Assembly (NCBI GenBank): GCA_025594325.1
Contig: JANHCV010000010.1
Coordinates: forward strand, 1,364,001-1,428,000
DNA from: Blastocladiella emersonii ATCC 22665
Taxonomy: Eukaryota; Fungi; Blastocladiomycota
Length of the DNA stretch: 64,000 bases
Direction of reading: 5' to 3'
Part shown: in pieces, positions 22,963 through 64,000 of the stretch
Numbering within the stretch: the stretch's first letter is position 1
Layout: every line of letters begins with the position of its first letter
Program-made: the position numbers and the translations under genes
The notes under the pieces: generated by a model
What the model saw: the letters and a program-made list of their open reading frames with translations, nothing else
Told to the model about the DNA's origin: nothing
Databases searched by the model: none

Positions 22963-24344
22963 TCACAGGTCGGGCGACTCGTCACGGCTGCAATCACTGT
23001 ACGTGGAACAGCGGTCGCTGTCGGAAGATTCGCTTCCACGGTCGCTGTCCTGCAGCTCGACGACGGGCAGACCCGTGCTCGCCCACCAGTCGAGGCGCGT
23101 TTGGACCTTGTCCGGGTCGTCGCCTGATGCCACGAAACCCCAATTCTGCGGGCGGACAAAGGTCCCCTTGGGCAAGGACTCCAAGTAGAGGGAAAGCGCG
23201 AACACGTTGTTGGCGGTGCTCGCGCGCTCGATTGCTCGTTCCCAGAACGTGGAGCCGCGACCATTGCAGACTATGTCGTCGGACTCGACCACATTCTCAG
23301 AGACGGTCCGGATAAACCAATCGAGAACTTTGACGTTGTTCGAACCAGCTGCGTAATCGAGAAAGTTGGACCAGAACTTGACCGACAGTTTTTCGTAGTC
23401 ATAGACGTAGTCATGAGGGGAGAGATTGTTGCCATCGCAACAAGCATAGCAACTGTCGGAGCAGTCGAATGAAACGCCGTCGAAAAGCACAGAGGGCGGA
23501 GACCCATCGTCGCTGACGTTTGGCAGGTTCGCGAACATGTAAAGCCAGTCGAGGACATAATTTGGTTGTTGATCGCGTCTTTGATGATCTGACCCCAGCC
23601 GGGGACCCGTTCCGCCTAGGTGTCGTCGAATCGCTCGTACGGGTCGTATCCAAGGATAGCCATGTTCTGCGCCTTGATCGCAATTCCAGGAATGCTGCAA
23701 TGGGTGCCCTGGGAGTCGTCAAAGTCGCCACCAAGTTCGCTGTAAAACCGGTCAACAATGGCGCGGTGGTCGTTCTTGATGGCACCTTCAATGCCGCGCT
23801 TTGTGAACTTGAGTTTGAGCTCCGAACTCGACCACCAATCGAGGACCTGGACGTGCCCATGAGTGCAGGCCTTGTCCGCTGCGTCGGACGTGTACTTGAT
23901 CAAACAATCGTTCTCGAGAAGCCATTCAAGCACGTCGACTTGACCAAACGCGGACGCGACATCCGCTGGGTACGGCCGCTTGATCTCGTTCCAGTCGAGC
24001 GCTTTGCAAGTGTCGAGCAGATCGACTCGGCCGGTCGCGCAAAGCAGTTGAACATAGAAAGCGGCGTCAGCAGGCTTTGACGAGAGCTGGCGGTGCTGAA
24101 TGAGCAGGTCGCGAAGCGCGCCGTACTCGGGTTCCAACGCGCGCAGGATACGCGGGTGAAGCGAGATACACAGTACGACGCGTCTCAGCTGGCGGAGACC
24201 GGGGAGGACGCGCAAGAGCGGAAGCGGATCGGCGCCGTAAGGGTTGAGCTTGACGACGTGGACAAGGACGGCTTCCACGATTTCATAAGGCAAGAGAGGT
24301 TGCCCCCGTATTTGCGGGGAGTCGTTGCATGGTATTTGCTTCAT
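22963..24344 (-). pseudogene. B1: F-box-like + ankyrin-like repeat gene, disrupted
   Basis: MKQIPCN..LLPYEIVEAVLVHV..DVASAFGQVDVLEWL; in-frame TAG at 23616-23618 where B2 has Trp, plus a -1 frameshift in an A-run near 23561. Confidence 0.75.
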
Positions 24345-24418
24345 GGTGGGCTTGGAGGGTAACTGCGGGAAGAGCGTGAAGCGCGAGCGACGAGCCGTGC
24401 GAAACGACTCCATCTCGG

Positions 24419-24442
24419 TCACATGATTTCTGAACGCGTCTC
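24419..24442 (-). promoter_or_regulatory. Bipartite motif upstream of B1
   Basis: TCACATGA-N7-ACGCGTCTC (plus-strand reading) 75 nt from the ATG. Confidence 0.55.
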
Positions 24443-24515
24443 GGCGCCGAGCCGCCTGCCTCGGGCCTCGGGTTCTCGTTCCAGGCACGCGCTCAATGCA
24501 TTAAAACTACGTATA

Positions 24516-25967
24516 TCAAAAATCAAACCAATTCCAACTCTCGCTACGCCCAAACAAGTAGTCTCCATCATCTGAATCGCCGCCCCCGTCGAGGTAAGGA
24601 CTCGCTGCACGGGGCGGACTCTGCTCCTCCTCGTACTCCGTGTTCCACCAGTTGATCCGCGCCTCTATCTTGGCTGGATCAAGGGCGCCCTTAATCGACA
24701 TGTAGGACCACCTTTGGCTCGGAACGTGGTCCCAGTTCGCCGGGCGGACAAAATCTCGCGACGACAGGTGCTGCTGATATGTGGCGAGCGCAACGACGTT
24801 GTTTGCGGTGCTTGCGCGCGAAATCGCTTCGGCCCAGAACGAGGAATCGCGACCGTAGTCGATGTCGCGGTTGAACACGTTTCTGCAGAACCACTCGAGG
24901 ACGCCCGACTTGTTGCAAGTTGCCGCGTAGTCAACGACGTTCAACCAGAATAAAAACTTCAGTTTGGCGACGGCAAACGTGTCACTGCAAGTTTCGTAAG
25001 GGTCATTTTCTCCGGAGTTACACAAGAAGCACCTGGCCGAGCAGTCTAAGCACAAATTTGCGAAGATTGGGCCGACGTTGTTTCCATCGGCAAGGTAAAT
25101 GTTGACCGCGCTCGCGTTCGTGTAAAGCCATTCGAGCACATCGACGTGCTGTTCGTTGACTGCTCGCTCGAGAATTTTCGTCCAGTCGAATACAAAACGC
25201 TCCCAACACTCGTCAAATAGATCTTGGTGGTGCTTGAGGATCGTGAAGCTCCGCGCCTCGAGTGCGAGCGGGGGAATGACATGGCGAATGTTCTTATGTT
25301 CATAGTCGTATTCATCTTCCTCATCCAAATTGACGTCCTCGATAGTGGTAAAATCAAAATGCTTGATAAACCAGCTGACCGCATCCGCGTGGTCGTTCAC
25401 GATGGCGCACTTGAGGCCAGCGATGGATCCGCGGATTGTGTACAACCACTTGGACCACCACTGAAGCGTAGGCATGTCGCCGCGTGCGCAAGCAGCGTCA
25501 ATGGCGTAAGCTGTGCACTTGTCGTTGTACACCAACCGGTTGGCGCAAAGCCAGGTGAGAACATGGACGTGTCCGTGCGCGGACGCGATATCGAGCGGAG
25601 ACGGCCCCTCGATGCCGAGCCAGTTAAGGTGCAAACACTGCCCAAGCAGCTCCATGCGTCCAGATGCGCAAAGCAAGCGAAGGAAAAAGTCGAGCTGGTC
25701 GTCATCAGCGGAGGGTCGGCGGTGCTGGATCAACAAGTCGCGGAGGGGTTCGAGTTTGGGATAGAGTCCACGCGTGATCCGCGGATGAAGCGAGTAGCGC
25801 AACACGACGCGGTGCAGCTGGCGGAGACCGGGAAGGACGCGCAGCAGCGGAAGCGGGTCCGCGCCCTTTGGGTCCAGCATGACAGCCTGGACCAGAATGG
25901 CCTCGACCACTTCATAAGGCAAGAGAGTATGTCGTTGCATAAAGTTGTTACACGGGAGCTGCTTCAT
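24516..25967 (-). CDS. B2: F-box-like + ankyrin-like repeat protein, intact (483 aa)
   Basis: MKQLPCN..LLPYEVVEAILVQAV; repeats DIASAHGHVHVLTWL, IDAACARGDMPTLQWW, VDYAATCNKSGVLEWF; CxxC-x3-CxxC insert. Confidence 0.85.
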   Translation of the reverse strand: MKQLPCNNFMQRHTLLPYEVVEAILVQAVMLDPKGADPLPLLRVLPGLRQLHRVVLRYSLHPRITRGLYPKLEPLRDLLIQHRRPSADDDQLDFFLRLLCASGRMELLGQCLHLNWLGIEGPSPLDIASAHGHVHVLTWLCANRLVYNDKCTAYAIDAACARGDMPTLQWWSKWLYTIRGSIAGLKCAIVNDHADAVSWFIKHFDFTTIEDVNLDEEDEYDYEHKNIRHVIPPLALEARSFTILKHHQDLFDECWERFVFDWTKILERAVNEQHVDVLEWLYTNASAVNIYLADGNNVGPIFANLCLDCSARCFLCNSGENDPYETCSDTFAVAKLKFLFWLNVVDYAATCNKSGVLEWFCRNVFNRDIDYGRDSSFWAEAISRASTANNVVALATYQQHLSSRDFVRPANWDHVPSQRWSYMSIKGALDPAKIEARINWWNTEYEEEQSPPRAASPYLDGGGDSDDGDYLFGRSESWNWFDF

Positions 25968-26038
25968 GGTGGGCTTCTGGAGGGGTGCTAGAGAGCGGGG
26001 AGCTGTCGCAAGGCGAGACGGGCAAGCCTCAAGAGCGA

Positions 26039-26073
26039 TCACATGTCAGTCACATGTTTTCCCGTCGCGTCTC
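26039..26073 (-). promoter_or_regulatory. Bipartite motif (doubled E-box half) upstream of B2
   Basis: TCACATGT twice (26039, 26050), then GTCGCGTCTC. Confidence 0.5.
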
Positions 26074-26509
26074 CTCTCGCGTGCCGTTGCGATGGTGTTG
26101 GTAGACGGGGTCGCGCGAGGGCTGACATAGCGATCTACGCTTGGGGCTTATAAATTCACGCGACGGTGGCGCCTGCGATAAAGTCTGTGATCGAGCGACA
26201 CGTCGTGTCTTCGCCTGAATGGCCATGCGGCGAATCGTCAATCGTGGTGGAACGTCTTACTTCTTTCCTTGCTTACATACACGGCCTGACGGGTTTGCTT
26301 GGCTTCCTTGCGCGCCACGGAGAGGGACTAAGCGAGACGTTGACGAGCCGCGCGCGGAGCAAAACGGTTGGATTAACGGGACGTAGAAAAACACGCGTTT
26401 TTATAAAAAAACAGAGAGTGATAGACAAACACGATGGCCGTGCTATGTGACGCATTTGCTGGACTCTGGCACAACGAGGCGGTTGTTGGAACAGGGCCGC
26501 CGCCGCGTT

Positions 26510-27449
26510 CTACTCTTTGTCGCTGTCGCAATCCGACTCCTTGTCCGGCGCAGTGGCCTGGAACCAATCAATAACTTCCGGATCGTTGAACTTCTTTGCG
26601 AAGGTACGGGCTTTCAACCAAAAGCGGGCCTTGCTGTCGAAGCTGTCATAGACATGCGCCTTGGGTACATAGTCGTATACCCAGTCAAGAACGTGAACGT
26701 ACTTGTTACGAATCGCATTCTCGACGATCTGGGTCCAGCTCGGGGACGACATCCAATTGCGCACGAAATGGCGCTCGCAGGATGGCAAGGTTCCCCGCTT
26801 CAAGGGCGTATACCGGAGCGAGAACCGCGGCTTCGTAGAGCTGATCGTACACGTTGTTGTAGAGCCACGAGACGACATCGGGTTTGTCGTTCTCGATGGC
26901 GTTGATCATGGCAATTTGCGAAATCTTGATCTCCAGGCCCGACTCCTTCCACTAGTACAGCGTGTCAAGATCGCCATCTGCACACGCTTGGTTCAACCCG
27001 TAGGCCTTGTACTTGCCAATGCGACCGGACTCGTGGAGCCAGTCAATGATCAAATGCCGCCCGCACGCAGTTGCGACGTCGGCCAAGTAGGGCGGTCCGA
27101 GCTCAATCCAGTCGCGGTCCATGCACTGCTCCATCAGCTCGAACCGGTCGTCAGCGCACAGCAAGCAGCGATAGAAGTTGAACTGGGCCGGGTCCGAGCA
27201 CGGCTGGCGGTGCTGAATCAGCAGCCCGCGGAGCTCCTTGTTGTCAAACTCCAGAGCGCGTTGAACGCGAGCGTGCAGAAAGTAGCGTAAGACAACGCGG
27301 CGCAGGTGCCCAAGGCCGGGGAGGACATGAAGCAGCGGGAGCGGGTCCGTCCGCTCGGGGTCGAGCAGGATCGCTTGGACCAAGATTTCCTCGATGAGCT
27401 CAAGCGGCAGGCGCGTTTGCATGGAGTAGTGACATGTAATTTGCTTCAT
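26510..27449 (-). pseudogene. B3: F-box-like + ankyrin-like repeat gene, disrupted and shortened
   Basis: MKQITCH..RLPLELIEEILVQA; TAG at 26952-26954 (W in the xxWW motif), frameshift near 26777, Cys-insert region missing. Confidence 0.75.
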
Positions 27450-27549
27450 GGTTGCGGGAGGCGGGGAGGGCGGGCTGCAGCGGCGGTGGCCGAGCTCAGC
27501 CTCAGATGACCAACGCGAAAGCACCAAGACAATCGTCGCCACGTGCCCC

Positions 27550-27574
27550 TCACATGATTGTTCGTCGCGTCTCA
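27550..27574 (-). promoter_or_regulatory. Bipartite motif upstream of B3; 25-nt exact repeat of 28610-28634
   Basis: TCACATGATTGTTCGTCGCGTCTCA occurs at both 27550 and 28610. Confidence 0.6.
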
Positions 27575-27692
27575 ACAACGCGGCCACACGGGCAGCTGCT
27601 GGGGCAGCTGCGTTGGCGACCGCAAACCGCAGTAGGGCTGGGTGACGCATTGCGCTGGTGCAGCAAAGGCAAATTACGTTTAGAGCTGCTAG

Positions 27693-27990
27693 GTCGCTGA
27701 GGCCGTTGCCCAGGAGACGGGCAAGGAGACGGACGGGTCTGCCCTTCCGCACCGCCCCCAACAAGTCCGAGGCCCTGAACGCGCACGACGCGCTCGTCGA
27801 GGCCCGTGGTGCGTTCTCAGCGAGTTGCTGCTCCCCGAGAATGAGCCCGGGTTGTCCATCGTGCCTGACAAGGTGAACCCAACGCAGTGCGAGGCCATGG
27901 CCATGGTGTGCGCGCACGTCATGATCCATGTTGCGCCACAGACAGCGACTCATGGTGGACGCCAAAACACCTTCAGGATCACGACGCGTG
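27693..27990 (+). pseudogene. FUM1: Degenerate internal fragment of class II fumarate hydratase
   Basis: [10 protein letters not shown] / [27 protein letters not shown] / [34 protein letters not shown] matches the fumarase GSSIMPGKVNP signature region, with frameshifts and a deletion of about 25 codons; no start or stop context. Confidence 0.8.
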
Positions 27991-28048
27991 TCTCAAGTTC
28001 AAAAGCGATTGATTACCATGCGAATCTCGCCAACCCCATCAGGCCGTA

Positions 28049-28270: not shown

Positions 28271-28609
28271 GTTGCTGCTGGCGTTCTTGGGCGCGGTGGG
28301 GCCGGCGGGGCGCGACTCGTCCGCGGCGGGGACGGTCTTGGCGGCGTCGACGGCCGGGGCCGCGGTGGCGGCGGTCTGCGGAGCGCGTGCTGGGGAACCG
28401 ATGGCGATGAAGTAAACGAGTTGATGCGTAGCAAAATGATCTTGAAGCGCGGAGAGCTCGAGGGAGGCGAGGGGGCGCCTGCGCGCTTTATAGCGTTGAG
28501 CGAGAGGGCGCGGCGCACGCTCTCCGCTCACCGTTTTCGCTCGTTCCGGAACTCGCGTTTCCCCGTGCCTGTCAACTCGTTCAAACCACCTTCCATGTGC
28601 GATCTCGCA

Positions 28610-28634
28610 TCACATGATTGTTCGTCGCGTCTCA
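28610..28634 (-). promoter_or_regulatory. Bipartite motif copy identical to 27550-27574
   Basis: Exact 25-nt match with further partial similarity downstream. Confidence 0.55.
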
Positions 28635-28760
28635 CGGCGAGCCGCGCGGGCAGCAGCCGCAGCCATGCTGGGCTACGCGCTGTGCCACAGCGCGCCGCTC
28701 TCAGGCGCTGGCTGGACGGGAAGAACAAGACACCAACTGTGTATGGTCGAGCTTTGCTCT

Positions 28761-30145
28761 CTACTCGTAGCACACCCTCGCGTGGGGCGCCCGCACCAGC
28801 GCGACCCGCATCGACGCTGGCGGGAGCGGCATCGGCGAGTCGCCGATCGTGCACCCCTTGAACTCGAACTGCTGAATGGACGGCGGGAGCCCCCGCACAA
28901 GTGCGTGGAAGGCGATCTCGGTCAGCTGAAGCTTGTTGAGCTGCAACGTCTTCAAGTTCGGCGGGCACCCGCGAACGAGCGCGACAACGCCCGCGTCGCC
29001 GAGCTTGGTTGACGAGAGATCGAGCTGGACGAGCGTGGGGCGGAAAGTGCTGGGCCAGCGCCGCCACGCCGGACCGCGTGATCGCGTTGTTGGAGAGAAT
29101 CAGGTGCTTCAAGCCCGCCGGGAGAAGCGGCGCGAGGCCGCGGACCTCGGCCGGGTCCCTGATACAGTTCGAGAGAAGGAGCGATTCGAGCTGGGGCGGG
29201 AGTCTCAGGAGAGCCACGCGCAGCGCGCCCGGCGCGAACGTCGACCCGCTCAGCGAGAGCCACGTCACGGTGGGCGGAAAGTGAAGCGCGAGCTGCCGGG
29301 CGGCCTCGGGGCCAAAGTCACACGCAGCGAGGTTGAGCGTCCGCAGGGCGGGCGGGAGGTACCGGAAGATGCCGCCGGGCGTGGCGCCACCGATCTGGCA
29401 CGTATCCATGTTGAGCGTTTTGAGGCCGCGCGGGAACACGGTCGCGCCGGCGTCGTCGTGCGTCACGCCCTCGCACACCCAGTTGTGGTCGAGCGTCAAG
29501 GTCTTGACCGTCTCGGGCAAGCGGAGCGCGCGAATCTCGGGGAACGTGAGGTCGCAGAAAGTGAGGCTGACGGCCGTGACGCGCTGGGTCGGCGAGGCGA
29601 ACGCAATCGCAAGTTTGTCTGCGCCGTGCGCCGTGATGCGCGCGTACCGGACGCTGACCGTCTCGAGCTCGCCCGAGATAATGTTGGACAGCATCGCCTC
29701 GAAGCGCGAGTCGCCGAGGTTCCGCGGCATTCCCTCGTAAACGTGCCCCACTTCGCCGTAAAAGTGGACCTTGGGCTCGGCCCTGGCCAGGTCGCCGGCG
29801 GCGAGGAGACCCGACCGCCGCCACCAGTCGAACACGGTGTAGTATCGCGGGCGGTGTAGCTCGATGGCGCGCCAGTTGTACCCGAGCAGCCGCGGACTGG
29901 CGCCACATGTCGAGGACGTGCAGGCGGTTGGTCATGCTCGCCTCGGTCATGGACACGGACAGGACGTGGGCCTGGATCGCCGGCCAGACGGACGGGACCT
30001 GGTGCATCGGGACCACGCGCAGGTAGGAAAGCATGGCGGGGACCTCGTCCGGGTCGTGCAGGTGGACGGCCGCGACCAGGATCCGGTCGAGGAGCTCGGG
30101 GGCGAGTCGCGGAAGTGGTTTCATTTGATCCATGCTTTCATTCAT
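28761..30145 (-). pseudogene. LC: divergent F-box-like + ankyrin-like + LRR gene with two frameshifts
   Basis: MKPLPRLAPELLDRILVAAVHLHD..SMTEASMTNRLHVLD..FDWWRRSGLL, then LRRs; frameshifts near 29893 and in a G4 run at 29037-29040. Confidence 0.7.
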
Positions 30146-39445: not shown

Positions 39446-41822
39446 CTAGTGCTCGCCGTGCTCGCCGCCGCCGCTCCCGCCGTGCGGCATGTAGTACACC
39501 GTCTCGCCGCCGCCGTGTTGCTGATGCGCACCAGGCGCCGAAGCAAGGAGCCACTGCATCGCCGCCGCCTGCTGATGCTGCTGCTGCTGCATGAGCATCG
39601 CCGCGTACTGCTGCTGCACCGCCACCGCCGCCATCTGCCCGTGGTGGTGGTGGAACTGCTGCTGCGGCGCCCGCGGAAGCGGGACCACGGGCGACCCCCA
39701 CGCCGACGTGTGCGGGACCGGGTGCCCGTGCCCGTGGCTGTGATGGTGGTGGTGGTGAGCCCGCGGGACCGCGGGGACCGGGGCCGCGCGACGCTGGACC
39801 AGCACTGGAGCGGGCTCGACGACGATCACGCCCGAGTCGCTGCCGAGCGCCGCGGACGCGGGCACCGACCGCGCGCGTTTGTGGTGGATGTGGTGGTGGT
39901 GGTCGGGTCCGCTGGCGAGGAGCGCGGCCGCGGTCGGCGCGGAAGGGGCGGCGGAGGTCGACTTTTTACGTTTCCGTGGCGAGGAGGCGGGCGTGGTCGA
40001 GGTCTACACCCGCAAAAGTGAGTGGTTTGCGCGCGGCCATGGGTGAGCGGGAGGAGAACGTACCGATGCTTCGCCCTCGAACCCCTCGATCGCGAGCTGC
40101 CCCGCGGGCGCGGGCGACTCGGCCGCGGCGCTGCTGCTCGCCGCGCGCTTGTGGTTGTGGATACAGTCGGCGCACGACGCGACGCGGCCCTCGAGCTTGT
40201 CGCGGCGCCGCCGGTTGCAGAACCAGTCTATACACACGCGCACACGCGTCGTCAGCCACGAACCACACCCTCGTCCCGCGCCGCGAAACGTACACTCGAC
40301 CTGCACCGGCCGGAGCTCGGCCGCCTGCGCGATCTCGGTGCGCCGCGCCGAGTTGAGGTGGATGCACAGAAAGTAGTACGAGTACAGCAGCGTCGTGACG
40401 CGCGGCGCGAACGCGCCCGTCGGCGTCTGCGCCTGCCCCTGCCCCGCTGCCCCCGCCGCCGCCGCCGCAGCGGCAGCCGCAGCGAGCTGCTGCTGCGCCA
40501 GGTGCGCCGGAACCTGCCCGCCCGCCGCCTGGATCAGCGTCGCCAGCGCCGCCGGATCGATCTGGATCGTCGCCATGGTCCCCGCGCCGTCCACTGGGTA
40601 GCTGAACTGCGCGACGCCCGGCGCCAGCGGGGCGGCGGTGGTGGTGTTGGGGGAGGTGGTGCGGATCTGCGGGTTCGGGCCTAGCAGCGCCGCCGCGAGC
40701 GACGCCATCGGCACCGCGTGCAGCACCGGCTGCGCCGCGCGCGTGGCGGGCTCGAGCGGGGTCGGCGTCGAGACAGCGGCCGACGCGGCGGCAGCGGCCG
40801 CGGCGGCGGCAGCGGAGGCTTTCTTCGACTTGGCCGACGTCGTCGACGACCGGCGCCGCTTCGCCTTGGATGCTGCCGGAGCGGGCTTGGCGGCGACAGC
40901 AGGCGCGGGGACGGACTCGGCGGCGACGACGGGTTCAGCGACGGACGGCACGGGCGTGGGGTCCTCGGTGTACTTGACGAGCGCGCGCTCGCCGACCGCG
41001 GCCGCGGGCTGATGCTTCGACTGCTGCGCCTCCTCGGTGCCCCCCTGGAACAGGCAGCTGTAAGGGAGCGGCCCATCCTCGATGTACTCGTCGTGCTTGC
41101 CGCTGCCGCTCCCAAGCCGCGCGTCGTTGTCGTGGAGCACGGGCGATAGCGGGTCGACGGCCATAGGCGACGCCGCGTGGTGGTGGTGCTCGGCCGTCGC
41201 GTCGCCGTACCCGACAGCGAGGTACGCGGGCCGCGCCATCGGCGACGACGCGCCGAGCCGCAGGCCCGCGGGCGGCGACCCCGCGTACGCCGCCAGGTCG
41301 TCGTGCGGGTGAATCTGCAGCCGCGCGGGCGACAGCGCCGGGCTGCGGAACTCGCCGAACCGCGGCGACGGCGAGCGCGCACCCGCAGGCGAGTCCTGCG
41401 GCAGCAGCGTCGTCGGGTACGTGAGCGGCGACGAGGCAGGGCCGGGGCAGGGCGCGGCGGCCTCGGTCTGGTGGAAGAGCTGCGACATCGACAGCGGGTC
41501 GTGGAAGCCGGCGAAACCGGGGTCTAGCAGCAGGTCCGACGCCGACGAGGACGGGAACGGGTCGCTGTCGCTGGCCGTCCGCGGCGCCGAATGTTGCTCG
41601 GGCTGCGGCTCGACGCTCGGCGACTGCGTCGCGCGGTGGAACCCCGAGTCGGCCGTGTCGGTCGATGCCGAGCGCTGCTCGGGATCTGGAGGCGACGAAG
41701 ACCGCCAAGTCAGCGAGCGGGACCGCGTGCGGAGCTCGATTGATCGCGACAGGCGTACCGTAGCCGAGCATCGCCTGATCCGCCGCGATACACCCGGCAC
41801 CGCCGCCGTGTGAATGATCCAT
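39446..41822 (-). CDS. Homeobox transcription factor with an atypical Cys50 homeodomain and His/Gln-rich tail
   Basis: Spliced exons 41822-41759, 41685-40294, 40227-40064, 40003-39446 give F8..L16..R31..I34A..L40..QVEYWFCNRRRR, then the NLS-like PRKRKK. Confidence 0.8.
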
Positions 41823-46860: not shown

Positions 46861-47491
46861 ACTGTGTAAGGCCGACCCTCAATGAAAGAAAATCAACATC
46901 ATATTACGTAAAAGAGAAACATAAAATCAAATGCGGGGCTTTGCCCAAGCTATAGTGACCGCGATTTTCTGGCTAACGCTCGTCACGTGGCCGTCACACT
47001 TTTCTCAATGACATCACTCCCCGTGTCGCGTTCCGCCACTTCGCTTCGGCTCCCGCTTCCGCGCTGCTCCCCTCCCATATGCTCCCCTTAATCGATGAAG
47101 CTGAATTAATCTATGCAATGGATCTTATAAATCATGGACTCGATGGCAGGCTGGTCCCGTCTCTCCTGCAGCGTTTTGGGTGGAGCCCGCGCAGCAAAGT
47201 GCTGTGCTGCGCTTCGTTCGACCGTTGGCTTGAGCGTTCCATTGGCATCGCTTTCGCACTGTCCTCTTCAAGCTGCACGAGTGCTGCTTAAGCGAGCTCG
47301 TGAGCGGAGAAGCATGCCGCGGGATGCTTTCACGTTGCCTGAGCTTGCAGTGCCTTGTCTGCTGAGGTGACCCAAGCTCGAAATTCTTGCTTATTGTGTC
47401 CTTATCCTTCCCCTGCTGTTGATGGACTCGCTCTTCCTGCGCCGCCGCCGCCGCCGCTATTACTACACTGCCGTTATGCCCGCCAGGCCTA

Positions 47492-47521
47492 GCGTCGCGT
47501 CGCGTCGCGTCGCGTCGCGTC
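47492..47521. repeat. (GCGTC)6 microsatellite
   Basis: Six perfect pentamer units read directly. Confidence 0.95.
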
Positions 47522-48805
47522 CTGGTTACTTGCCGCGGGACTTTGCGCTGAGCGACGCAGCCGCGTGAACCCTCGCGACGAGTAGCTACTCGATATCTCC
47601 TTCTCGGCGGTATGAGGGGTGCGAGCTATGTTCTGAGCAGAGCGCGCAGCTGACTTCGTTCCAGCGCAAGCATGCGCGGCTCCATCGGCTGTGCTGCTCA
47701 CCGCTTTTGTTCATGATCGCTGCAACCTGGCCGGTGGCGGAACGCGCTATTGACTCGCTAGAACACCTTGTTGGCGAGCTCTATTTGATGCGCGTTGCGA
47801 ATCATCATGACGTTCGACATTGATATGCTTCCCATGCAATTTGTGCACGTCGACCACCGCGCAGCTGAAGGCGAGCAAAAGTCGGCTGAGCAGGCCGTCG
47901 CGGCCGCTGATGCCAGCTTCTCACCAACAGGCGTGCGTCAGCACGTGCTTGACAGTCCTCCCGTTCTTGAGGTTTCGCGTGAAGCGAGTATTGCTGCATG
48001 AGCAAGTTTTGCCAGGTGGGGACAAACGAGACGAAGCGCTCCGCCCATGCGTGCATCATGATGCACACGATGTTGGTTAGCGCTGACGCGTCCCACGTCG
48101 CAACGAACGTCATCCCGTGGTCCGCCCTATCGCGCGTCGACCTTGCCCAACCGTTCCACAGTAGGCCCGCTTCATCTGAGCGCTCTTGGTCCGTTTCTGA
48201 GAAACCAAGCTTGCTCGAGGTCTAAAACCAGATTGTGGCATGCGATGCACACGGTCACATTGTCGGCTGGTTCCTGTCGCGTTGCGGGAGACCATGGGGA
48301 AGTTGAGTCGCTGGAAGCGCGCGCTAAGTGAAGGAAGTAAAAGCGACCCGTTTGGCGACCTTCGGTTTGCTCCGTCCCGTCCGTAGTCGACTTAATCCAG
48401 CTCAACAGCAGGAAGTCGAGCAAAAGCGAGAGAAGTAGGCGTGTCGGGACAGCTCCAACGCGCGGTACTGACGCGTCACGACCCTTTCTCTCGTGTCCCT
48501 CCATGTAACGCGGATCCGAAGCACGGCCTCAGTCAGCGCTGCTGCACCTGAAGCAAGTTCCGTGTGTTCTACTTCATAAATCATGCAGTTACTTGAATCA
48601 CGCGTCCACAACGTCGTCGCACGAGCAGCCGGCCGCCGCAGGCGGCCTGTTGGCTGCGAAGTGGGACAAGCGTTGTGCGAGCACGAGCGTACGCCCAACG
48701 CGTCCGTTGCGCCAAGTGATCGCTGCGAGAGGGCAGTTGGGCAAAGCCCCGCACAGTTGACACCTGAACGGAGTGAGTGGTGGAGGTACTGGCAATGCAC
48801 AGCTA

Positions 48806-50634
48806 TCAGTAGTACGAAAAGGTCTCAGGAGCCCGCTCCACGTGCCAATCAATCAACTTGAGAGTGTCACGGCTCATGTCACCGCCTTCCTCGTCACAAT
48901 CGTCGTACGGAAGTACGATTTGCAGCTCACCCTTGCGAGCAAGCCCGAGGTCCAAGGCGAGCAAAATTCCAGCTTTGGTGAAGTTGTTTCCGTGAAGCAC
49001 AATCGACTTGACAGAATGGGGGAGCCGAGCGGCGAGAATGCCTGAGGCCTTGTCAGTCAGTTCGCAGCAGCTGAAAGAAATTGACTCGAGCACGGGCGAA
49101 GCACGGTCCATGAGAGCTGCAATGAAAGGATCGCCAACATGGATGCTTGAGTTGAGGTTAAGCACTTTGAGGCGCGGGCCAAGGAACCGTGGCAAAACGA
49201 CCTCAGCGTTACGAGCTGAGCTGAAGTACAAGTGGTTGAGATGCAGCTCCTCGAGGACAGGGAAGGCATGTTCGCCGCTTGTTGATTCCGCAATGTCACC
49301 AAGAAACCCCAGATCAGCACAATCCCTGAGCTCGGGGTGCCCGACTTTGAAAAACTTGAGCGAAGGCCGCTGTCGGTTTGCCAGAGCAAGCAACACAAGT
49401 TCGTTTATGTTCATTCCGTGAAGCTCAAGCTTCTCCACGGAACCCGGGAGGTGCTGGAAGATGATATGAAGGCCGCTAAGAGCGATTTCTTTGCTCGCGC
49501 TCAGAATCAGAGTCTTGAGGTGTTGAGGAAGTCCAAGGCCCAGGTGCATGGCACCATCTGAGGTGAATTTTTCGCTCTGCAGTTCGAGGTGCTTGATGTA
49601 GACGGAAGATGACGCGACAAAGCCGTGATGCCCTCGTCGTCAAGGTCGCAATTAGTCATGGTCAAGGAAACGAGACCCGGGGGCAGACCGCGTGCCAGGT
49701 GCGCCACGGTGTTGGAATCCAGCACGCATGAGGTGAGCGTGAGCTCTTGAAGGCCGCGCGGAAGATGCTCCAGGTTGGCAGCAAAGTGTGGCAGGGAAAG
49801 ATTGTCATTGTAAATCTTGAGCGAGCGAAGCGTGTCTGGTAGCGAAAGCAGCGTGCCTCGGGTGCACCCGTGCGCGATGCGATTTCCCGTAAGGTGCAGC
49901 GAGGTGAGCGAAGAAGAAAAGTTGATAGCTTGCAGGCGGTGAAAGTCCAGGTCGACCTCGTCTAAAGTAAGCGAGAGGACTGGGTGGTCTGGGATCGAGA
50001 ATGCGCGGTTGAGCTCGTTGATACCAGCAATCGAGATGCGGTGGCTCGAAACGCGTATATCAGTGCTTCCATGTTTGACGTACTCGCACGCATGCGCACA
50101 GTGAGCGTCACCGGCTGCAACTTTGGAACCCACTATACCCCCAGGAGGCACAACGAACGAAGGAACGCGACACTTGAGTCGACGCTGTCCGCCGGACACT
50201 GGTGGCGGGCTCTGGGGGTAGAAAATAGGCGCACCGAGGAGAACGGCGGCCCAATTCGGGAGCTGGCGGTATTTGAGAGGCAGACCAGAGTCGCGCCAAA
50301 ACTCAACAGTTTCGTAGTGGCGGTTCGCGACGGCGAGCTCCAGGGCGGTCTCGGTGTACTCCATGGGGAGCTCGTTGGCGATGCGAAAGCGAAGGAGGTC
50401 GAGTCGATTGGTGGCACTCGCGTCGTCAACAGAGATGGTCAAGACTCGCTGCTGGACAGCCTGGTAAGTGCAGGGAAGGTGGGCACGAGGTGCGACCCGC
50501 AAATAGGGCGCAAGCACGGCGAGATCGACAACGCCGTCACCGCGGTCGTGGAGCCGCACGGCCACGGCGACAATCTTGTCGAGGAGTTCGGGTACGGCAA
50601 GCTTTGGTTGTTGCATGGAGTCCATAAGTTGCAT
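48806..50634 (-). pseudogene. L4: LRR family gene with a 1-nt frameshift
   Basis: MQLMDSMQQPKLAVPELLDKIV; at about 49601 CCG TC|TAC ATC AAG CAC shifts frame, whereas L3 reads LPSFLKHLDL continuously. Confidence 0.7.
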
Positions 50635-55984: not shown

Positions 55985-58041
55985 ATGGCGCCTGATCCCA
56001 GCAGTAACGGAACTCGCGGCGCCGCGCCCGCGACTCGCGGACCTCGCGGCCGCCGCAGCGGAGCCAAGAAGCCGCGCGCCAAGAAGCCGGCCGCGTCGAG
56101 CTCGAACACGGCGTCATCTTCGTCTTCGGCTGCTGCTGTCCGCGCTACTCAGCAGTTGATGTCCCCGGCTCGCAGGTACGCGAGTACTGCGGCGCGATCT
56201 AACGGGCAGCTTGACTGACTTGCGCGAACATCCAGCAGGGAAGAAGTCTTCGACGAAGTGACGGACCAGCTGCGCCAGTCCGACTACGGCCTCAGCCTGC
56301 TCGTCGACCATGCGCGTAAGGTGATGGAGGCGCGGGCGAACGGTGCCGACTCGGACGAGGACGACGAGGCGATCGTGCCGCCGTCGCAGGAGCTCAAGGA
56401 CATGGCGTCCATGCTCTTCGCCACCAACCCCGAGATGTACGACTCGATGCGCAAGATGGGTCTCCCGCTCCCCGCGCCACGGGCCGAGTGGGCGGCGCCC
56501 GGCGGCAGCGGCGGTCGTAGCTCGGCGGCGTCGGGCGCATCGAGCGGGTTCCCCGCGGGCTTCTCGGACCTGCACCTCGAGAAGGCCGTCGCAGCCATCG
56601 GCGGCACGCAGAACCTCCACACGCCCAAGGCCTCGGTCAGCATCGCGGTCGGCGAGATCAAGGTGACGCCGCTCCTCGAGTTCACGGCATCGGGCGAGGA
56701 GAAGATTACGGGGTACGAGGAGGGCGACTCGGGCGACGAGGAGGCGCCGGGCCTCGCGAGCCGCGCCGTCGTCTTCCACATGTGGTGCCACGAGACCCGC
56801 GTCGCGCACCCGCTGTGCTTCTACATGTACAACTCGGTCCGCCCGCACCTCGTCGCCGGACGCATCAACAAGGTCGTCAGCAAGCTCCAGCGCAAGGGGT
56901 TCACGGTCGTGTCGTGGTTCTCGGACTGGTGCGTTCCTCGAGAGTGTGACCCTGTCCTCATCGACTTGATGCTGACTTCCTCGATGCATGCAGCAACTCT
57001 ACGTACCACGAGATCAACGAGCTCGTGTCGACCAACCCGTCTATCAACTGGATCCCGGACCCCGTGAGCGTCCTCAAGGGCCTGCGCGACGCGCTGGCCG
57101 ACCCGAACCTGACCCTCGACATGCACACGGGCGGCGTCGCCAGCATCCACTGCGTCGCCAACCTGGTCGCCATCATCAAGCGCGAGCCGCGCCTCGCCAA
57201 GCTCTACAACATCACGCCCGAGTACATCCAGCTCAAAACCGACGGCTGCCTGATGCTGAACACGACGCTCACGGACCTGACTCCGCACACGGCCAACGCG
57301 CTCCGCCTCATGTTCATCGTGCCCCTCGACAAGATCCTCGCGAGCGGCGGCTCGCTCACCGCGTCGACGCGCGCGCAGCTGCAGGACGCCCTGGCGTCGG
57401 TCAAGTCGACCCTCTTCTACATGTCGGCCATGATCAAGTACCGCGCGGCGTTCCTGAGCCGCGAGCGTATCGCGAACCTCAACCACTCGGTGCTCACGGA
57501 GCTCGACGACGTCGCCGAGTACTTTGTCGCGTGGCAGAAGCACCTCGACGCGCGCGCCACGCGGACCACGGGCTCAGCGGCGGCGCGCGAGGCGTTCAAG
57601 GCCAAGTCGTTCATCCCGATGACCACGTACTCTGCGCTGCTCGACTCCATGGACGGGTTCAAGCTCGCGGCGCGCCGCCTGGTGCAGACGGACGTCAAGC
57701 CCGTGGTGCCCGTTGCGTTCGGCAACAAGTTCGTCAACGACTTTCTCGCCGAGGTGCGCGCCGCCGGCGTGCCGCGCGTCCAGGCTAAGCACATCATCGC
57801 CCAGGCCCTCAAGACGCACCAGCAGAACGCGATGCTAATGCGCGCCACGGCCAACATGCGCCGCACGCCCGAGTACTACGACGGGCCCGACGACGACGGG
57901 GAGACGTGGCGGGCGCCCGCCGAGCTCGTGTTCGGCTCCGACAACCGCGACGAGGGGCTTGACGAGAATGGCGAGGGGATCGACCAGGACGGGTTCCTCC
58001 ACTACGACTTTTTTGGCCACGCGGCCGAGCACGGGCACTGA
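55985..58041 (+). CDS. D1: protein derived from a P-element transposase (THAP-less), catalytic residues degenerate
   Basis: Spliced with introns 56176-56238 and 56929-56993. SIAVGEIKV..LEF, AVVFHMW..HPLCFY, VVSKLQRKGFTVVSWFSD, PDPVSVLKGLRD, LYNITPEYI, FGNKFVNDFL.EVRAAG are collinear with P transposase AFDEMKV..FEY, KQPVFF, LRKLHRKGYLVVAIVSD, SDTPHLIKLVRN, LFKINENHI, LNQDIVEHFFGSMRSRG. Confidence 0.8.
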
Positions 58042-58242
58042 TGGGTGAAGCGGCTTGTCGGATTTTTGTCTTAATCACACTGCGCTTTTGCTTATGATAC
58101 GCTCGTCGAACCGAGAGTCGCGACCGACCGACCGACAACGCGCCGTGTTTCATTCCAACGTGACTGGCGCAGCGCCTTGCTGAGCACCGCGCGTCGGCCT
58201 TCCCACGCTCTCTCACGGCAAACGAACGGAGAATTGAACTTA

Positions 58243-58257
58243 GGGCCCGTTTGGTTC
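58243..58257 (+). repeat. Left terminal inverted repeat of the PIF element
   Basis: GGGCCCGTTTGGTTC preceded by TTA. Confidence 0.95.
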
Positions 58258-58376
58258 CGGGGTGAATCAGGTGGATCAATCGATTTTACACGGTCCGGTG
58301 TTCACCCAGCTGAAACGTGGCATTTTCACCCCGTCGCGTTCATCGCGGCGTTTGGGTCGACCCCCGGATGAGCTGA

Positions 58377-58841
58377 ATGGAACCCTCGTCGCTGAATTGC
58401 CCGTCTGCTCGCCCCCGAAACCTTCAGGCTGTGCTTCCCGGCCTATATAAACGCTGTTTTCCTTCGTGGGGCGGCTCGACCACCACCGGCGAGTACTCGC
58501 ACCTCGAGCAGGACGGCAAGGAGTCTGGTGACGTGGAAGGTGTCGATGGTCAAGACGACGCGGCCCCCGCCAGCAAGCGCAGCCGCACTTCGGACAGCAG
58601 CTCGCGTCGCCTCTCGGACTCGGAATTCCTCATGGGCATCAAGGAGGTGTTCCAGAGCGTCGCGACCGCCGACTCCAAGCCCGTCCTGACCGCCGCACTT
58701 GAATGGGTCCAGGACGCGTACAACGACAATGAAGAGTACCAGATCGACGTCGCCACCCGCCTGACCGAGGATCAAGCGCTTCGCGTCATGGCCGTGTCCG
58801 AATCGAAGCGCAAGCGCATCCTCGAGATTTTCATTCAGTAG
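58377..58841 (+). pseudogene. Probable 5'-truncated PIF ORF1 (Myb/SANT partner) remnant
   Basis: 154-aa frame inside the TIRs with an acidic/basic linker and a helical C-terminus; no Myb domain visible; assignment rests on position. Confidence 0.45.
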
Positions 58842-59154
58842 CTCACTCGCACATGTCCCCCTCCCCTCGCGTTGCTTCCTGGCCTTGTTCTCGCCCATTT
58901 GTGTCCAATACATCTGGCTTTGTGTCCATCGTATCTTCAATCGTTACCCTTCGCTCGAAAATGACGCGACTCGTTGAGAAACGCGTGGTTCGCAAAGTGT
59001 CTCACACGTCACGTGATTGATCGACGCGTCCCCACCGATGCGTTCTGACCTCAGCGACGCGTCAAATCATCTAGAATCGCTTATATAACATTATAGTACT
59101 TGACAAATCAGTATATTACAGCATGCATGCGGGTACAACAATTATTTCGCGCCT

Positions 59155-60472
59155 TCAAAGACGGGTCCCACGAGCGGCCATGACGCGCCTGTACTCGGTC
59201 CAAAGAACATTTGCGACGCGGTTCCGAAGCGAGATACCGCGCTGACGAGCTCCGTCCAGCGAGGCCTCGAGGACAGCGGCCTCGTCGTCCTCCTCGTTCT
59301 CGTCGTCCAGGGGCTCGCGCCCACGTACTGGCGCCTCACGCGCCGCGTCCCGCGCGCGCCGGAGCTCCGTCTCGGCGTCGCGAAAGAAGGCGTCGCCGCC
59401 TTGGTTCCACTTGTTGATCATGTTGTGCAGCGTGCAGAGCGCGTACACAAGCTTGACTTGAGTCTTGATTGGGTAGGCCGCGCCAATCGAGAGGACGCGG
59501 AACCGCTTCTTGAGCACGCCAAAGATATGCTCAATGGAGTTGCGGAGCGACGCGTGACGCAGATTGAAAAGCTCTTCGCGGTTCTTAACTCTACGTACGT
59601 TGGTGAAGCAGATGAGATGGCGCCAACGTGATGGTCATGGCAGTGAGAACGTACCCATCCTTGCCGCGGGCAAACTCGCGAAGATGATAGCGGGTACCGC
59701 GGAAGGGCACGATGATGGACGTGCGGTTTGCGTAGCCGCCGTTGGCGAGGTAGAAGCGGCCGGCGGGGATCTTGAACCCACGGGCGAAGGCGTCCGAGAG
59801 CACGCGCGAGTCATGCGCCTTGCCCTCCCACCCTGCGAGAACGTAGGTGAAGTTCAAGTCAAAGTCGCAGGCAGCGAGGACATTTGAGTATATGGTCCCC
59901 TTGCGGTTTCGGAACGAGTCGTGAAGCTTAGTGGGCACAACAAACGGGATGTGCGTTCCGTCAAGCGCGCCGACCGCGTTCTGGAACGGAGCGTATTTCG
60001 GGTCGTGGGCGATGCGCTCATGCACGGGCGTAGAATCGGACGGCTGGACAATGAACTCGGGCATCAGGCGGTACAGAGCGTCGAGCACTTGCTTCAGAAC
60101 CCTGGACGCGGTCTCGCCAGAGATTTGGAACCGCTCCCTGAGGTTGCGGTTGGTGCTGCCCTCGCCGGCCATGACAAGAAAAACCATGAAGCGCGCCTCG
60201 ACGGACAGCTCGCGGCCGTCGGCGAGAAGGCCACGGTCGCGGAACAGGCGGCAGATGGCCTTGAAGGTCTCGCGGGGCATACGGGCGATTTCCGAAAAAC
60301 GCGTTTCGCTGTTGCACGTCAGCAGCTCTTGAACCCACGACTCGCCAGAAAGCGTGGACGTGCGGATAGGCTCCCACGAGCGGCGCTCGTTGCGCGCAGC
60401 GAGACGTCGCAGGAGAGCGAGGGCGGCCGTGAGTATGAGGCCGCGCAGCTTGCGGTTGTATCCCTTGCCCAT
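59155..60472 (-). CDS. PIF/Harbinger DDE transposase with one intron; second catalytic Asp changed to Asn
   Basis: RMPRETF, VGALDGTHI, RNRKG..SNVLAACDFDLNFTYVLAGWEG.AHDSRVL, YLANGGY (canonical YLxDxGY), FNLRHASLRNSIEHIFGVLKKRF, CTLHN; intron 59591-59654. Confidence 0.9.
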
Positions 60473-60679
60473 GTTGTTTGAGGGCTCGAGAACACGATGC
60501 GTGAGGTTAGGTGTTGATTCGTTGCAATAAGTGCGGCTGCAAAGAGGTGGGAAAGATTTTATTGCGGGGGGGGGGGGGGGAGGGGCGTTCATCCAGCGGG
60601 GCGTTTGGTTCGCACGGCCGCTGAGATGAACGGGGGTGAGGTGAAACGTGGCAACTTTTTCAGCTGATCCACCTGATCT

Positions 60680-60694
60680 GAACCAAACGGGCCC
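60680..60694 (-). repeat. Right terminal inverted repeat of the PIF element
   Basis: GAACCAAACGGGCCC followed by TTA. Confidence 0.95.
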
Positions 60695-60700
60695 TTAACC

Positions 60701-62678
60701 ATGATGACTACAAGTGCTAGCAACGGCGGTCCCCGTGGCACCGCTCCAGTCGCGCGCGGGCCGCGCGGCCGTCGCAGCGCCGCCAAGAAGCCGCGCGGCA
60801 AGAAGCAGACCTCGTCGGGCGCGAGCGAGGCGACGGCGCCCGCGCAGGGAGAGTCGTCGTCTTCTAGCAGGTGCGCGGTGGAGCAACATCATGGTGGGTC
60901 TGCGGACCGCGTCGACTCACGACGCGCTCGACGACCCAGTATGCACAAGCAGCGCTCCGATGGCGCCAACCACAAGAAAAACGACCCAATCAAGGGCACC
61001 ACTCGGCCGCAGGAGGCCACCTACGAGACGCCCTTCGCCTTCAAGCCCAACCCCGGGTTCGTGCGCGAGATGATGCGCCTGTACCGCAAGAAGACGCCGC
61101 CGCCGCCCAAGCCGAAGCCGAAGCCATCATCTGCACCCGACGACGACGAGTCTAGCAGCTCGACGGATTCCGCGTCCGACTTCCCCGCCGGGTTCTCCAA
61201 CATCCACCTTGACCTCGCCGTCGCGGCCATTGGCGGCGCCAGCAGCCTCAACACGCCCAAGGCCTCGGTCAGCATCGCCATCACCGAGATCAAGATCGCG
61301 CCCGCCAGCACCACGGCGACCAACGAGGGCGGCGACGACGACTCGCCTGGCCCCAAGCGCCGCGCCATCGTGTTCATGATGTGGTGCCACGCGACGCGGC
61401 TCGCGCACCCGCTTTGTTTCTTCACGTACAACTCGATCGACCCGCAGTCCATGGCCGGCCGCATCAACAAGGTGTTCGCCGAGCTCGAGGACAAGGGGTT
61501 CGAGGTGCTGTCGTGGTCCTCGGACTGGTACGCGCTCAACTGCGCCATACCGCTCGCACACCGCTAACGTCGATCCCCTCTGTAGTTCTGACGCGTACCA
61601 CAAGATTGCCGAGCTCGTGTCCGCGGCCAACTCCTCCATCAGCTGGCTCCCCGACCCGCTCTCCGTCACAAAGCGCCTGTGCGACGCCCTCTCCGACCGC
61701 GACCTTGCGCTCCAGGTGCGCGAGGGTATCCCCATCGACCTCGACTGCGTCTCCAACATTGCCGCGTTCATCAAGGGCGAGCCGTGCCTCACCAAGCATT
61801 TCAACGTGTGCGACGGGTCAACCGCCCACGGCTTCATCTCCTCCAAGACCGACTTTGTTGCACGCATCGAAGTGGCTATCCAGAGCGTAAACTCGCACAC
61901 GACGTGCCAGATGCGCACGGTGCTCATCGACGCCATCCTCGCGATTGGGACCGACCCCGCGCTTGACGCGCCGACGCGAACGCGCCTGCGCGACGCGGTG
62001 GACCCGGTCAAGGCGACGCTCACCTACATGCTGGCCGTGCGCGGGTACTGGGAGAGGTTTGTCGGCTGCCGCGACCGCATCGCCAACCTCAACCACTCGG
62101 TGATGACCGAGCTCGAGCAGATCGCGAACTATTTCATCGAGTGGGAGAAGATGGTCGACGACCGCGTCGCGCAGGCCGACGGGACCGCGGCCGCGCGCGC
62201 CGCTCTCAAGGCCAAGTTCTTCATCCCCGCGACCACGTACACGGTGCTGGTCGAGTCGATCGCCTCGTTCAAGTCGGTCGCGCGCCGGCTGCTCCAGACC
62301 GGTGTCTCGCCCGTGGTCCCGGTTGAGGTTTGCGACACGTTCATGAACCAGTTCCTCAAGGACTTGCACGCTGCCACCGCGCCTGCGCCCGTGCCGCAGA
62401 TCAAGCACATCCAGGACACGGCCGTCAAGATGCACCGGTTCAACGCGGCGCTGCTGCGCGACGCGGCCAAGAAGAACAGCGTGCCCAAGCACTACGACGG
62501 ACCGGCCCCGCTCCAGTTCCTTGTCGCGGCGAGCACGCCCGCCGAGCTCTGGTTCGGGCGCAAGTACGAGAACGACTCGGACGGCGGCGGGACTCGCGGC
62601 AAGCAGGGCGGGTCCAGCTCGAACCAGGAGGACGTGCGGCGTGTCTTTGGTACCGCCCGCAGTAACCTCCTCAGCTAG
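60701..62678 (+). CDS. D2: tandem paralog of D1, derived from a P-element transposase
   Basis: Same basic N-terminus RGPRGRRS.AKKPR; SIAITEIKI, AIVFMMW..HPLCFF, ELEDKGFEVLSWSSD, PDPLSVTKRLCD, VCDTFMNQFL; introns 60871-60939 (in-frame, uncertain) and 61528-61585 (same position as in D1). Confidence 0.8.
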
Positions 62679-62804
62679 GAGGGTAAAAACCGACAGCAAC
62701 GAAGAGTAATGTCATTCACGACCAATTTGCACAATATCACCTCCTTCTTGTTCATCGACTACGATCCTCGAGCGCTGTGGCGACCCCCGAAACGCGTCTA
62801 GTAC

Positions 62805-64000
62805 CTAGTACGGTTGGAAGATGGCCGGCTCTCGGTCCAAGTACTCGCTGAACAGCTCGCGCAGGGCCTCGCTGGGGCCATCGCGCAAGTAGCCGATCTT
62901 GAGTGCACCTTTACGTTTGAGCCCAAGCGCGAACAAAATCATGTACCCGGCCTCGGTGAAGTAATTGCCTGCCACGTGGAGCTTCTCGACCGAATCGGAC
63001 AAGTTGTTGGCAATCTTGATGGCCGAGATGTCCGTCAGCTGGCAGGACGCAAGATTGATTTCCAAGAGCGAGAGCGGAGCGTGTTGCATAATTGTCGCGA
63101 CGCCAACGTCATTGATACCGCACCCGGCGAGGGAGAGGACTTGAAGACGCGGTCCAAGTAGACGCGGAAGCAGCGACCGCGCGTTACAACTCAAGCGAAG
63201 CGGGAATCCGTCAAGGTACAGCGACTCGAGGGCCGGGAAAAAGTGCTCGCCACTCGGCGGCGCGTCTCCGATGATGTCCCAGATGCTTGGGTCAAACTCT
63301 GGCTCGCCTCGAACAGGATCGCTCTGCCGGAACTCGAGGATTTTGAGCGAAGGCCGCTGGCGGCTCGCGAGGGCCGCGATCGCATACACGTTTACATCCA
63401 AGTTGTTGAGGGAAAGCTCCTCGAGCGAGTCCGGAAGTTGAGCAAAAAGGGCCTCCAGGCCGGCCCGCATATCAAGGGTTGGAATATCGTTGAGAAGCAA
63501 TCGTTTAAGCTGCACAGGAAATGATCGGGCGAGTACCCTCACTGCCATCCCTGCAATACGGTTAGAGCTGAGATTCAGCTCCTCAAGTCCCGCGGGCAAG
63601 CAAGCTGCAATGATACCGGTTGTATCGCCATCCATGTTGCATTCTGTCAGGTCAAGTGCCCTGAGGCTGGCGGGCAGCCCGTTTCCGAGGTACATGGCGC
63701 TTGTCCAGTCGAGTGCACAATGTAGGAGTTTGAGCTTGACCAGGGACTGAGGAAGACGCTGCAGGTTGCGCGCAAAATGCGGATGAGTTAGGTCTTCGCC
63801 AAAGATCTCGAGGGACTGGATGGTGCTGGGCAGCGTCAGCGTTGGTTCGGGCGCGCATCGAGACGTGATGCGATTTGAACGAAGGCGCAGCTTGACGAGA
63901 GAAGGCGGAAGCTCGAGGGCACACAAGCGCGGGAAGTCAAGATCGACCATGTCCAGGGTCAAGCGAGTGATGGGATGGCCGGGAATCGCGAGAGCGCGAT
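62805..64000 (-). CDS. L6: LRR family protein, 5' end outside the window
   Basis: VDLDFPRLCALELPPSLVKL..HFARNLQRLPQSL..RLLGPRLQVL, collinear with L1-L4. Confidence 0.85.
   Translation of the reverse strand, partial: RALAIPGHPITRLTLDMVDLDFPRLCALELPPSLVKLRLRSNRITSRCAPEPTLTLPSTIQSLEIFGEDLTHPHFARNLQRLPQSLVKLKLLHCALDWTSAMYLGNGLPASLRALDLTECNMDGDTTGIIAACLPAGLEELNLSSNRIAGMAVRVLARSFPVQLKRLLLNDIPTLDMRAGLEALFAQLPDSLEELSLNNLDVNVYAIAALASRQRPSLKILEFRQSDPVRGEPEFDPSIWDIIGDAPPSGEHFFPALESLYLDGFPLRLSCNARSLLPRLLGPRLQVLSLAGCGINDVGVATIMQHAPLSLLEINLASCQLTDISAIKIANNLSDSVEKLHVAGNYFTEAGYMILFALGLKRKGALKIGYLRDGPSEALRELFSEYLDREPAIFQPY

Follow-up and report, generated by a model that had tools for sequence, protein, structure and literature searches.

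A very large family of putatively adaptor-like repeat proteins with one conserved head and two kinds of tail in the fungus Blastocladiella emersonii

A 64,000-nt stretch of the genome of the water fungus Blastocladiella emersonii ATCC 22665 (contig 2, or C2, positions 1364001-1428000; hereafter the window, to which coordinates refer unless a contig is named) carries ten related genes, seven of L type (L1 to L6 and LC) and three of B type (B1 to B3). Their products join one conserved N-terminal module, which we call the head or N-module, to one of two tails: leucine-rich repeats (LRRs) in the L type and an extended array of ankyrin-like units in the B type. Across the whole genome the family amounts to roughly 130 or more loci. 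The explanation that we favour, and to which we give a probability of about 55%, is that these genes form a very large Blastocladiales-restricted family of soluble, modular, adaptor-like repeat proteins with a constant head and a variable tail. All members would dock, by way of the conserved head, onto a single cellular partner, and their diversified LRR or ankyrin tails would bind different protein targets. Both the docking and the identity of the partner are what we infer from this layout; an SCF (Skp1-cullin-F-box)/Skp1-type ubiquitin ligase would be the leading, still unproven, candidate.

Results

A conserved head is joined to two kinds of repeat tail

A tblastn search of the window with the intact L2 and B2 proteins returns exactly ten genes, L1, B1-B3, LC and L2-L6. 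All ten encode an N-terminal helical module of about 60-75 amino acids (aa), followed by two ankyrin repeats with the signature VLxWWRxSGL. The head opens with the motif LPxE(L/I)(V/I)xxIL, and its residues P (in LPxE), L (in IL) and V (in LRV) are close to invariant. Heads of each type recover those of the other type by jackhmmer, with E values from 1e-36 to about 1e-5 (7e-5 for the most diverged copy, L5 of the window), and hhalign aligns the B-type with the L-type modules at 96% probability; the heads of the L and B proteins are therefore homologous.

The ankyrin part is recognisable both in sequence and in fold. Pfam Ank_4 scores 29.3 and 23.7 bits on family members against a cut-off of 22.7, and the ankyrin signature reads GRxDLL..., VLEWWRDSGL. 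An AlphaFold model of L2 residues 1-140, computed with 54 paralogs, is a single, confidently predicted unit of eight helices (pLDDT 86, pTM 0.75), and its residues 70-140 match many ankyrin proteins, with Z scores of 6-7 and an rmsd of 2.2-3.5 Å over 60-75 residues. A few of these ankyrin alignments begin already at L2 residue 38-41, as they might if the head were an extra ankyrin cap, but they add no aligned residues. A SOCS-box or BC-box head, to which an LPLL motif could point, was also considered and was rejected because the BC-box pattern is absent and Pfam gives no match to the head at E <= 1; ASB7 aligns to the L2 model through its ankyrin repeats only.

The L tail is made of 13-14 ribonuclease-inhibitor-like LRRs with a period of 26 residues, which in L2 start at residues 212, 236, 262, 288, 314, 340, 366, 393, 419, 456, 484, 512 and 538. 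Their assignment as LRRs follows from the regular LxxLxLxx(C/N) repeats and from Pfam LRR_6 scores of up to 46.7 bits against a cut-off of 23.4. A search of the PDB with the L family profile is headed by a GALA LRR protein and ribonuclease inhibitors (E 5e-20 to 1e-19), followed by LRRC34, NLRP1/3 and FBXL17. The number of units varies, two paralogs having one extra 26-residue unit. The B tail consists of about six to eight further ankyrin-like units which, in the B-type alignment, are irregularly spaced, follow the pattern VLxW(W/L/F) and end in a terminal WWRDSGL. No signal peptide, enzyme or transposon domain is reported by Pfam on the ten members.

A first-pass annotation, which covered positions 22963-64000 and also named L1, outside that range, had described much of this layout: ten paralogs sharing an N-terminal segment and ankyrin units, RNI-like LRRs in the L genes, a longer ankyrin array in the B genes, about half of the copies disrupted, and a lineage-specific, tandemly arrayed birth-and-death family built from one head and two kinds of tail. 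Our searches and models bear out each part of that description.

Family size and taxonomic range

In a six-frame search of the whole genome (32.65 Mb, 21 contigs), about 58 places match the N-terminus of L2 and about 76 that of B2; both counts are lower bounds, only the best candidates having been scored. The loci are spread over 12 contigs or more, and most of them have frames open for 400-700 aa.

Beyond this genome the head is rare. A profile of the N-module, run against 1.84 billion representative proteins, gives 34 matches only. Thirty of them were looked up: 26 come from B. emersonii, one from B. britannica and one from Allomyces javanicus, and two are JGI metagenome proteins. Three of the other four are 100% identical to the B. 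emersonii genome. Translated loci of this genome agree at 100% identity with GenBank proteins of B. emersonii ATCC 22665 (KAI91... accessions). As far as these data go, the head module appears to be confined to Blastocladiales. A word-based protein search with L2 found outside matches only to the ankyrin units (Cladochytrium and others), and says little about relatives, since LRR words swamped its candidates. The genome paper makes no mention of ankyrin, leucine-rich or F-box families (PMC9730499), and a full-text literature search yielded no description of an ankyrin/LRR family with such a head. We have thus found no earlier published account of the family.

In three long GenBank proteins the N-module is internal: in KAI9168245.1 it begins at residue 1056, after a complete NPR3 protein, and in two others at residues 286 and 707. 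These are probably merged gene models and not real fusions.

Selection and history

For intact paralog pairs with unsaturated synonymous divergence (dS), the ratio of nonsynonymous to synonymous divergence (dN/dS) is 0.25-0.5, which marks the genes as protein-coding and under moderate purifying selection. Taken by region, dN/dS ranges from 0.15 to 0.55 with no region higher, and the head usually belongs to the more tightly constrained regions. The LRRs stand out when their positions are separated. At the five x positions of LxxLxLxx, dN/dS is about 0.7 and mean pairwise identity 16.5%, whereas the rest of the LRR has a dN/dS of 0.2-0.27 and a mean pairwise identity of 46.7%; a saturated pair gives one higher dN/dS value, 1.21. 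The x positions fit a diversified predicted binding face but do not prove positive selection.

The family evolves by tandem duplication and decay, that is, by birth and death. We built a tree of 52 heads over 72 columns from a limited sample of loci plus representatives, and scored the tail type independently with tail hidden Markov models. This tree calls for a single change of tail type, on a branch whose SH-aLRT support is 100%, so the two architectures go back to one old event and then expanded separately. Ongoing domain shuffling was rejected, since the head tree needs one tail change only. The earlier proposal that C-terminal domains are swapped among heads therefore survives as a single ancient event but not as a continuing process.

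Comparison of the head with the F-box

The first-pass annotation had taken the head for an F-box, an assignment that our searches do not sustain. On the ten members, hmmscan with Pfam PF00646 and PF12937 finds no match at E <= 1. A six-frame F-box scan of the genome detects about 40 canonical F-box genes above cut-off, and none of these, compared by eye, coincides with the listed family loci, even at E <= 1. When 55 heads are aligned by hhalign to a profile of ten canonical F-boxes from the same genome the result is 2.4%, with 12 columns aligned, in the LP-ELV..IL helix only; B-only heads reach 4.1% and L-only heads 0.4%, with 12-15 columns aligned. Searches with jackhmmer from the heads never draw in the canonical F-box loci, and no F-box protein comes up when the PDB sequence set is searched with the head profile.

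The model of the B2 head (residues 1-100, pLDDT 89) has no Foldseek match, and its best VIA match is an APC subunit at Z 4.5. Among the listed Foldseek and VIA matches of the L2 and B2 models there is no F-box protein, although a domain of about 40 residues may score too low to be listed. The order of elements that AlphaFold predicts for the B2 head is helix, loop, short helix, loop, helix. The tryptophan conserved in the third helix of F-boxes is missing from the head, and where the B type has LPxE, the L-type heads have VPEL, which is a residue shorter. In the ESM Atlas the nearest clusters to the B2 head are fungal F-box clusters, at 0.89-0.90, a value of 0.90 being reached by 4-10% of shuffled proteins; we treat this as a borderline lead only. 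The L2 head gives noise only in the same resource.

The ten genes of the window

L1 lies on the plus strand and the other nine genes on the minus strand. Four of the ten are intact (L1, B2, L2 and L6) and six are broken (L3, B1, L4, L5, LC and B3), the lesions having been read directly in the DNA.

Among the intact genes, L1 (2934-4691, plus strand) is an L-type gene with an open frame for 585 aa that comprise the N-module, two ankyrin repeats and an LRR tail; its tblastn alignment spans L2 residues 1-572 at 45% identity, and its Pfam LRR_6 and FNIP matches are below cut-off. B2 (24516-25967, minus strand) is the intact B-type gene, an open frame of 483 aa with the N-module and an array of WW-type ankyrin-like units, on which Pfam Ank_4 exceeds the cut-off. 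L2 (42760-44556, minus strand), of L type and 598 aa long, has its N-module at residues 1-69, ankyrin repeats at 70-140, a linker, and then the LRRs from residue 212 onwards, with a Pfam LRR_6 score of 31.9 bits. L6 (62805-64000, minus strand), also of L type, runs on past the end of the window to about 64628, so that its 5' end is beyond the window. Its 607-aa frame (C2:1426874-1428628) is open and has no stops, no ATG precedes the conserved motif in frame, and Pfam LRR_6 scores 46.7 bits.

The broken copies, all on the minus strand, differ in their lesions. B1 (22963-24344), of B type, has an in-frame TAG and then a frameshift near 23560-23620; it appears as two tblastn pieces in different frames, and scores 29.3 bits with Pfam Ank_4. 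B3 (26510-27449) is a B-type remnant that keeps the N-terminal 200 aa and, at 26510-26878, a C-terminal fragment, with a TAG stop and an internal deletion; in GenBank the annotation is limited to a piece of 156 aa. LC (28528-30145), a diverged L-type gene that lies in high-GC DNA (GC, guanine plus cytosine), gives tblastn pieces in three frames and has a frameshift near 29860, and its GenBank model covers part of it. In L3 (44921-46711), an L-type gene with 52% identity to L2 by tblastn, the lesion is a TAG at codon 9 (46685-46687): the start reads M-Q-L-P-D-S-M-H-stop, then comes the conserved motif, and the frame is otherwise open. L4 (48806-50634), of L type, is seen as two overlapping tblastn pieces in different frames, with a frameshift near 49600. 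L5 (50820-52593), a diverged L-type gene, has a frameshift near 52070, and the open reading frame (ORF) of its tail scores 32.2 bits with Pfam LRR_6.

These lesions are unlikely to be assembly errors, because the published assembly (21 contigs, 34.27 Mb in total) was made from PacBio HiFi reads with Illumina polishing (PMC9730499) and because point nonsense changes account for two of them. Introns were rejected as the source of the frame breaks, because the breaks are point stops or shifts between overlapping frames and no gap is of intron size. Judged by their reading frames, the family genes look intronless.

At the starts of L-type genes (for example at 44556, 2934 and 50634), the residues upstream of the first ATG are kept as G-T-M in most paralogs, which fits an ACC-ATG context followed by an MxxxNSM(H/Q) leader. 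GenBank models of L-type genes often begin at the second methionine.

Genomic setting

The family genes are set among ordinary host genes: a patatin-like lipase gene, a DAGAT gene, a homeobox gene and a WD40 gene. GC content in the window is 66-72% in the host-gene parts versus 56-60% where family genes and transposons sit; the low-GC islands, at 22000-28000 and 42000-50000, contain family arrays and transposons. At third codon positions (GC3) the neighbouring DAGAT and patatin genes reach 0.92 and the family genes only 0.59-0.70. The B. emersonii genome looks compartmentalised, with the family arrays in transposon-rich islands of lower GC. In the homeobox gene (40004-42070, minus strand) the end of the homeodomain, with its WFxNRR motif, matches Pfam at profile positions 47-56 only, and the rest of the homeodomain appears to be split off by an intron.

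Two repeated elements accompany the arrays. A repeat of about 1.7 kb without an ORF lies between L3 and L4 (46930-48620, no strand assigned); genome-wide it occurs in at least 12 copies of 88-94% identity, besides numerous older ones, and is likely a non-autonomous transposon. A Harbinger/PIF-type DNA transposon (58238-60698, no strand assigned), whose ORF at 59591-60592 contains DDE_Tnp_4 and HTH_Tnp_4, adjoins the L6 end of the array. At least 40 genomic copies of it are 98-99% identical, from which we conclude that it was recently active, and two copies on contig C4 are separated from L-type family genes by no more than about 20 bp. Both kinds of element have their ends outside the family genes at the part of the loci for which element boundaries were mapped.

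Several smaller features were also noted. Separate from the 1.7-kb repeat, a piece of about 100 bp at 48696-48798 is conserved at 87-97% at many places in the genome. Beside the Harbinger element stands an ORF with a TNP-like RNase H N-terminal domain (60701-61567, plus strand), of which a copy at 67% identity is found 4 kb upstream (56549-57887). Elsewhere in the genome there are many inverted, near-identical pairs of genes tens of kb apart, both of the family and of other kinds, such as C2:235312-236370 (minus strand) with C2:317921-318979 (plus strand) and C2:1152772 with C2:1190815, among others. The family loci L014 and L016 form one such pair, with 99.4% identity and a dS of 0.008. These pairs are either inverted duplications, large and recent, or haplotype copies that were not resolved.

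Discussion

We have described a family in which one homologous head, under purifying selection and of narrow taxonomic range, is followed by two kinds of tail that parted once, and we read it as a set of adaptor-like proteins. Several observations weigh against this reading. No family or fold matches the head significantly. Six of the ten window copies are broken. The GC3 of the family is far below that of neighbouring housekeeping genes, which is compatible with weak expression or relaxed constraint. Variability of the LRR surface is expected in any LRR protein, and with dN/dS below 1 diversifying selection is not demonstrated.

A narrower version of the adaptor reading holds that the head is a highly diverged F-box and that the proteins are SCF substrate receptors which would bind Skp1 through it. 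The LPxE(L/I)(V/I)xxIL motif stands at the extreme N-terminus of the B heads, as this would have it, and the helix-loop-short helix-loop-helix order predicted for B2 resembles that of an F-box. F-box proteins, moreover, typically have LRR or other repeat tails, and FBXL17 and the GALA LRR protein are among the PDB matches of the family profile; the ESM Atlas neighbours of the B2 head point the same way, and giant-virus 'F-box and ankyrin' proteins occur among the non-significant rows of BFVD. Against this are the absence of a PF00646 or PF12937 match on members or family loci in a genome where about 40 canonical genes are found, the low hhalign values over so few columns, the jackhmmer and PDB searches without F-box proteins, the lists of fold matches without them, the VPEL of the L heads and the missing tryptophan. 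The Atlas neighbourhood, too, is noise for L2 and within reach of shuffled proteins for B2, and Legionella AnkB aligns through its ankyrin part only. On balance we consider a diverged F-box doubtful, if still a serious candidate.

The repeats could also be read as sensors. A receptor repertoire for non-self (viruses, parasites, allorecognition) that works without a NOD domain, with the tails as diversifying sensors, would suit tandem birth-and-death arrays with many pseudogenes, hypervariable positions on the predicted concave face of the LRRs, differences in LRR unit number between copies and a location in transposon-rich islands of lower GC. Yet no NACHT, NB-ARC, TIR, death-fold or other signalling domain is found by Pfam on the ten members at E <= 1, every estimate of dN/dS apart from the one saturated pair stays under 1, and the same pattern fits any fast-evolving adaptor family, all of which makes such a repertoire improbable. 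We hold an equally low opinion of the chances of a more specific proposal, in which the head, whether an unrecognisably diverged F-box or some unrelated fold, would be a new docking module that couples more than 100 hypervariable LRR or ankyrin sensors to one effector pathway, as a NOD-less, LRR-based recognition repertoire for viruses, parasites or non-self in early-diverging fungi. To our knowledge, the fungal immune receptors known so far have no LRRs. Finally, a selfish or foreign nature of the family, as DNA that came from a transposon or a giant virus and has little function for the host, is very unlikely. The GC3 contrast with neighbouring genes, the way in which the arrays alternate with active transposons (on C4, family genes have two Harbinger copies directly beside them), the 60% of broken copies in the window and the richness of giant viruses in ankyrin and F-box families would agree with such an origin. 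However, purifying selection acts on the proteins of intact copies, Pfam finds no transposase, integrase or capsid domain in the family genes, and the repeated elements end outside these genes. An IMG/VR scan with the L2 protein alone gave no relative and BFVD no significant match, and the presence of the head in Allomyces and B. britannica suggests vertical descent.

If the head does dock onto one partner, as the adaptor reading supposes, the family would be the largest single adaptor class in B. emersonii, its members being three times as many as the recognisable F-box genes of the genome. With its more than 100 LRR and ankyrin binding surfaces it would then be a natural library, in a fungus now being established as a model for cell biology. 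The family also marks fast-evolving, transposon-rich compartments of lower GC in a free-living, early-diverging fungus. At present it is a well-documented, functionally open, lineage-specific expansion.

Comparison with known systems

Four groups of proteins invite comparison. Fungal NLR (STAND) receptors resemble the family in their variable ankyrin-type sensors, tandem birth-and-death and high diversity, and differ from it in that neither NACHT nor NB-ARC is found by Pfam on the ten members at E <= 1. The tails of fungal NLRs are, as far as we know, of ankyrin, TPR or WD40 type and not of LRR type. Chytrid WW-type ankyrin proteins, from Cladochytrium, have the same signature, GHxDVLEWWRxSGL, and one of the two also begins with an LPLEII..II motif; the match extends over only about 10% of L2, hhalign does not detect the N-module in them (2.8%) and they have no LRR tail.

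The F-box and ankyrin families of giant viruses, together with Legionella AnkB, are alike in having a small N-terminal helical module directly before the ankyrin repeats, and in being large and lineage-specific. BFVD matches of the giant-virus F-box/ankyrin proteins to the family are non-significant. AnkB, an F-box and ankyrin protein whose structure has been solved with Skp1, aligns to the L2 model at residues 70-140 only (Z 5.9, 69 residues), and not in its F-box. With the F-box/LRR proteins of FBXL type (Skp2, FBXL17) and the bacterial GALA effectors, the differences are that the family head matches no F-box profile significantly, has no F-box protein among its listed fold matches and lacks the conserved F-box tryptophan, and that two ankyrin repeats stand between the head and the LRRs. 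The likeness lies in a short N-terminal helical module with an LPxE..IL-like start and in an LRR solenoid of the ribonuclease-inhibitor-like kind with a repeat of about 26 residues, the part through which FBXL17 and GALA match the family significantly.

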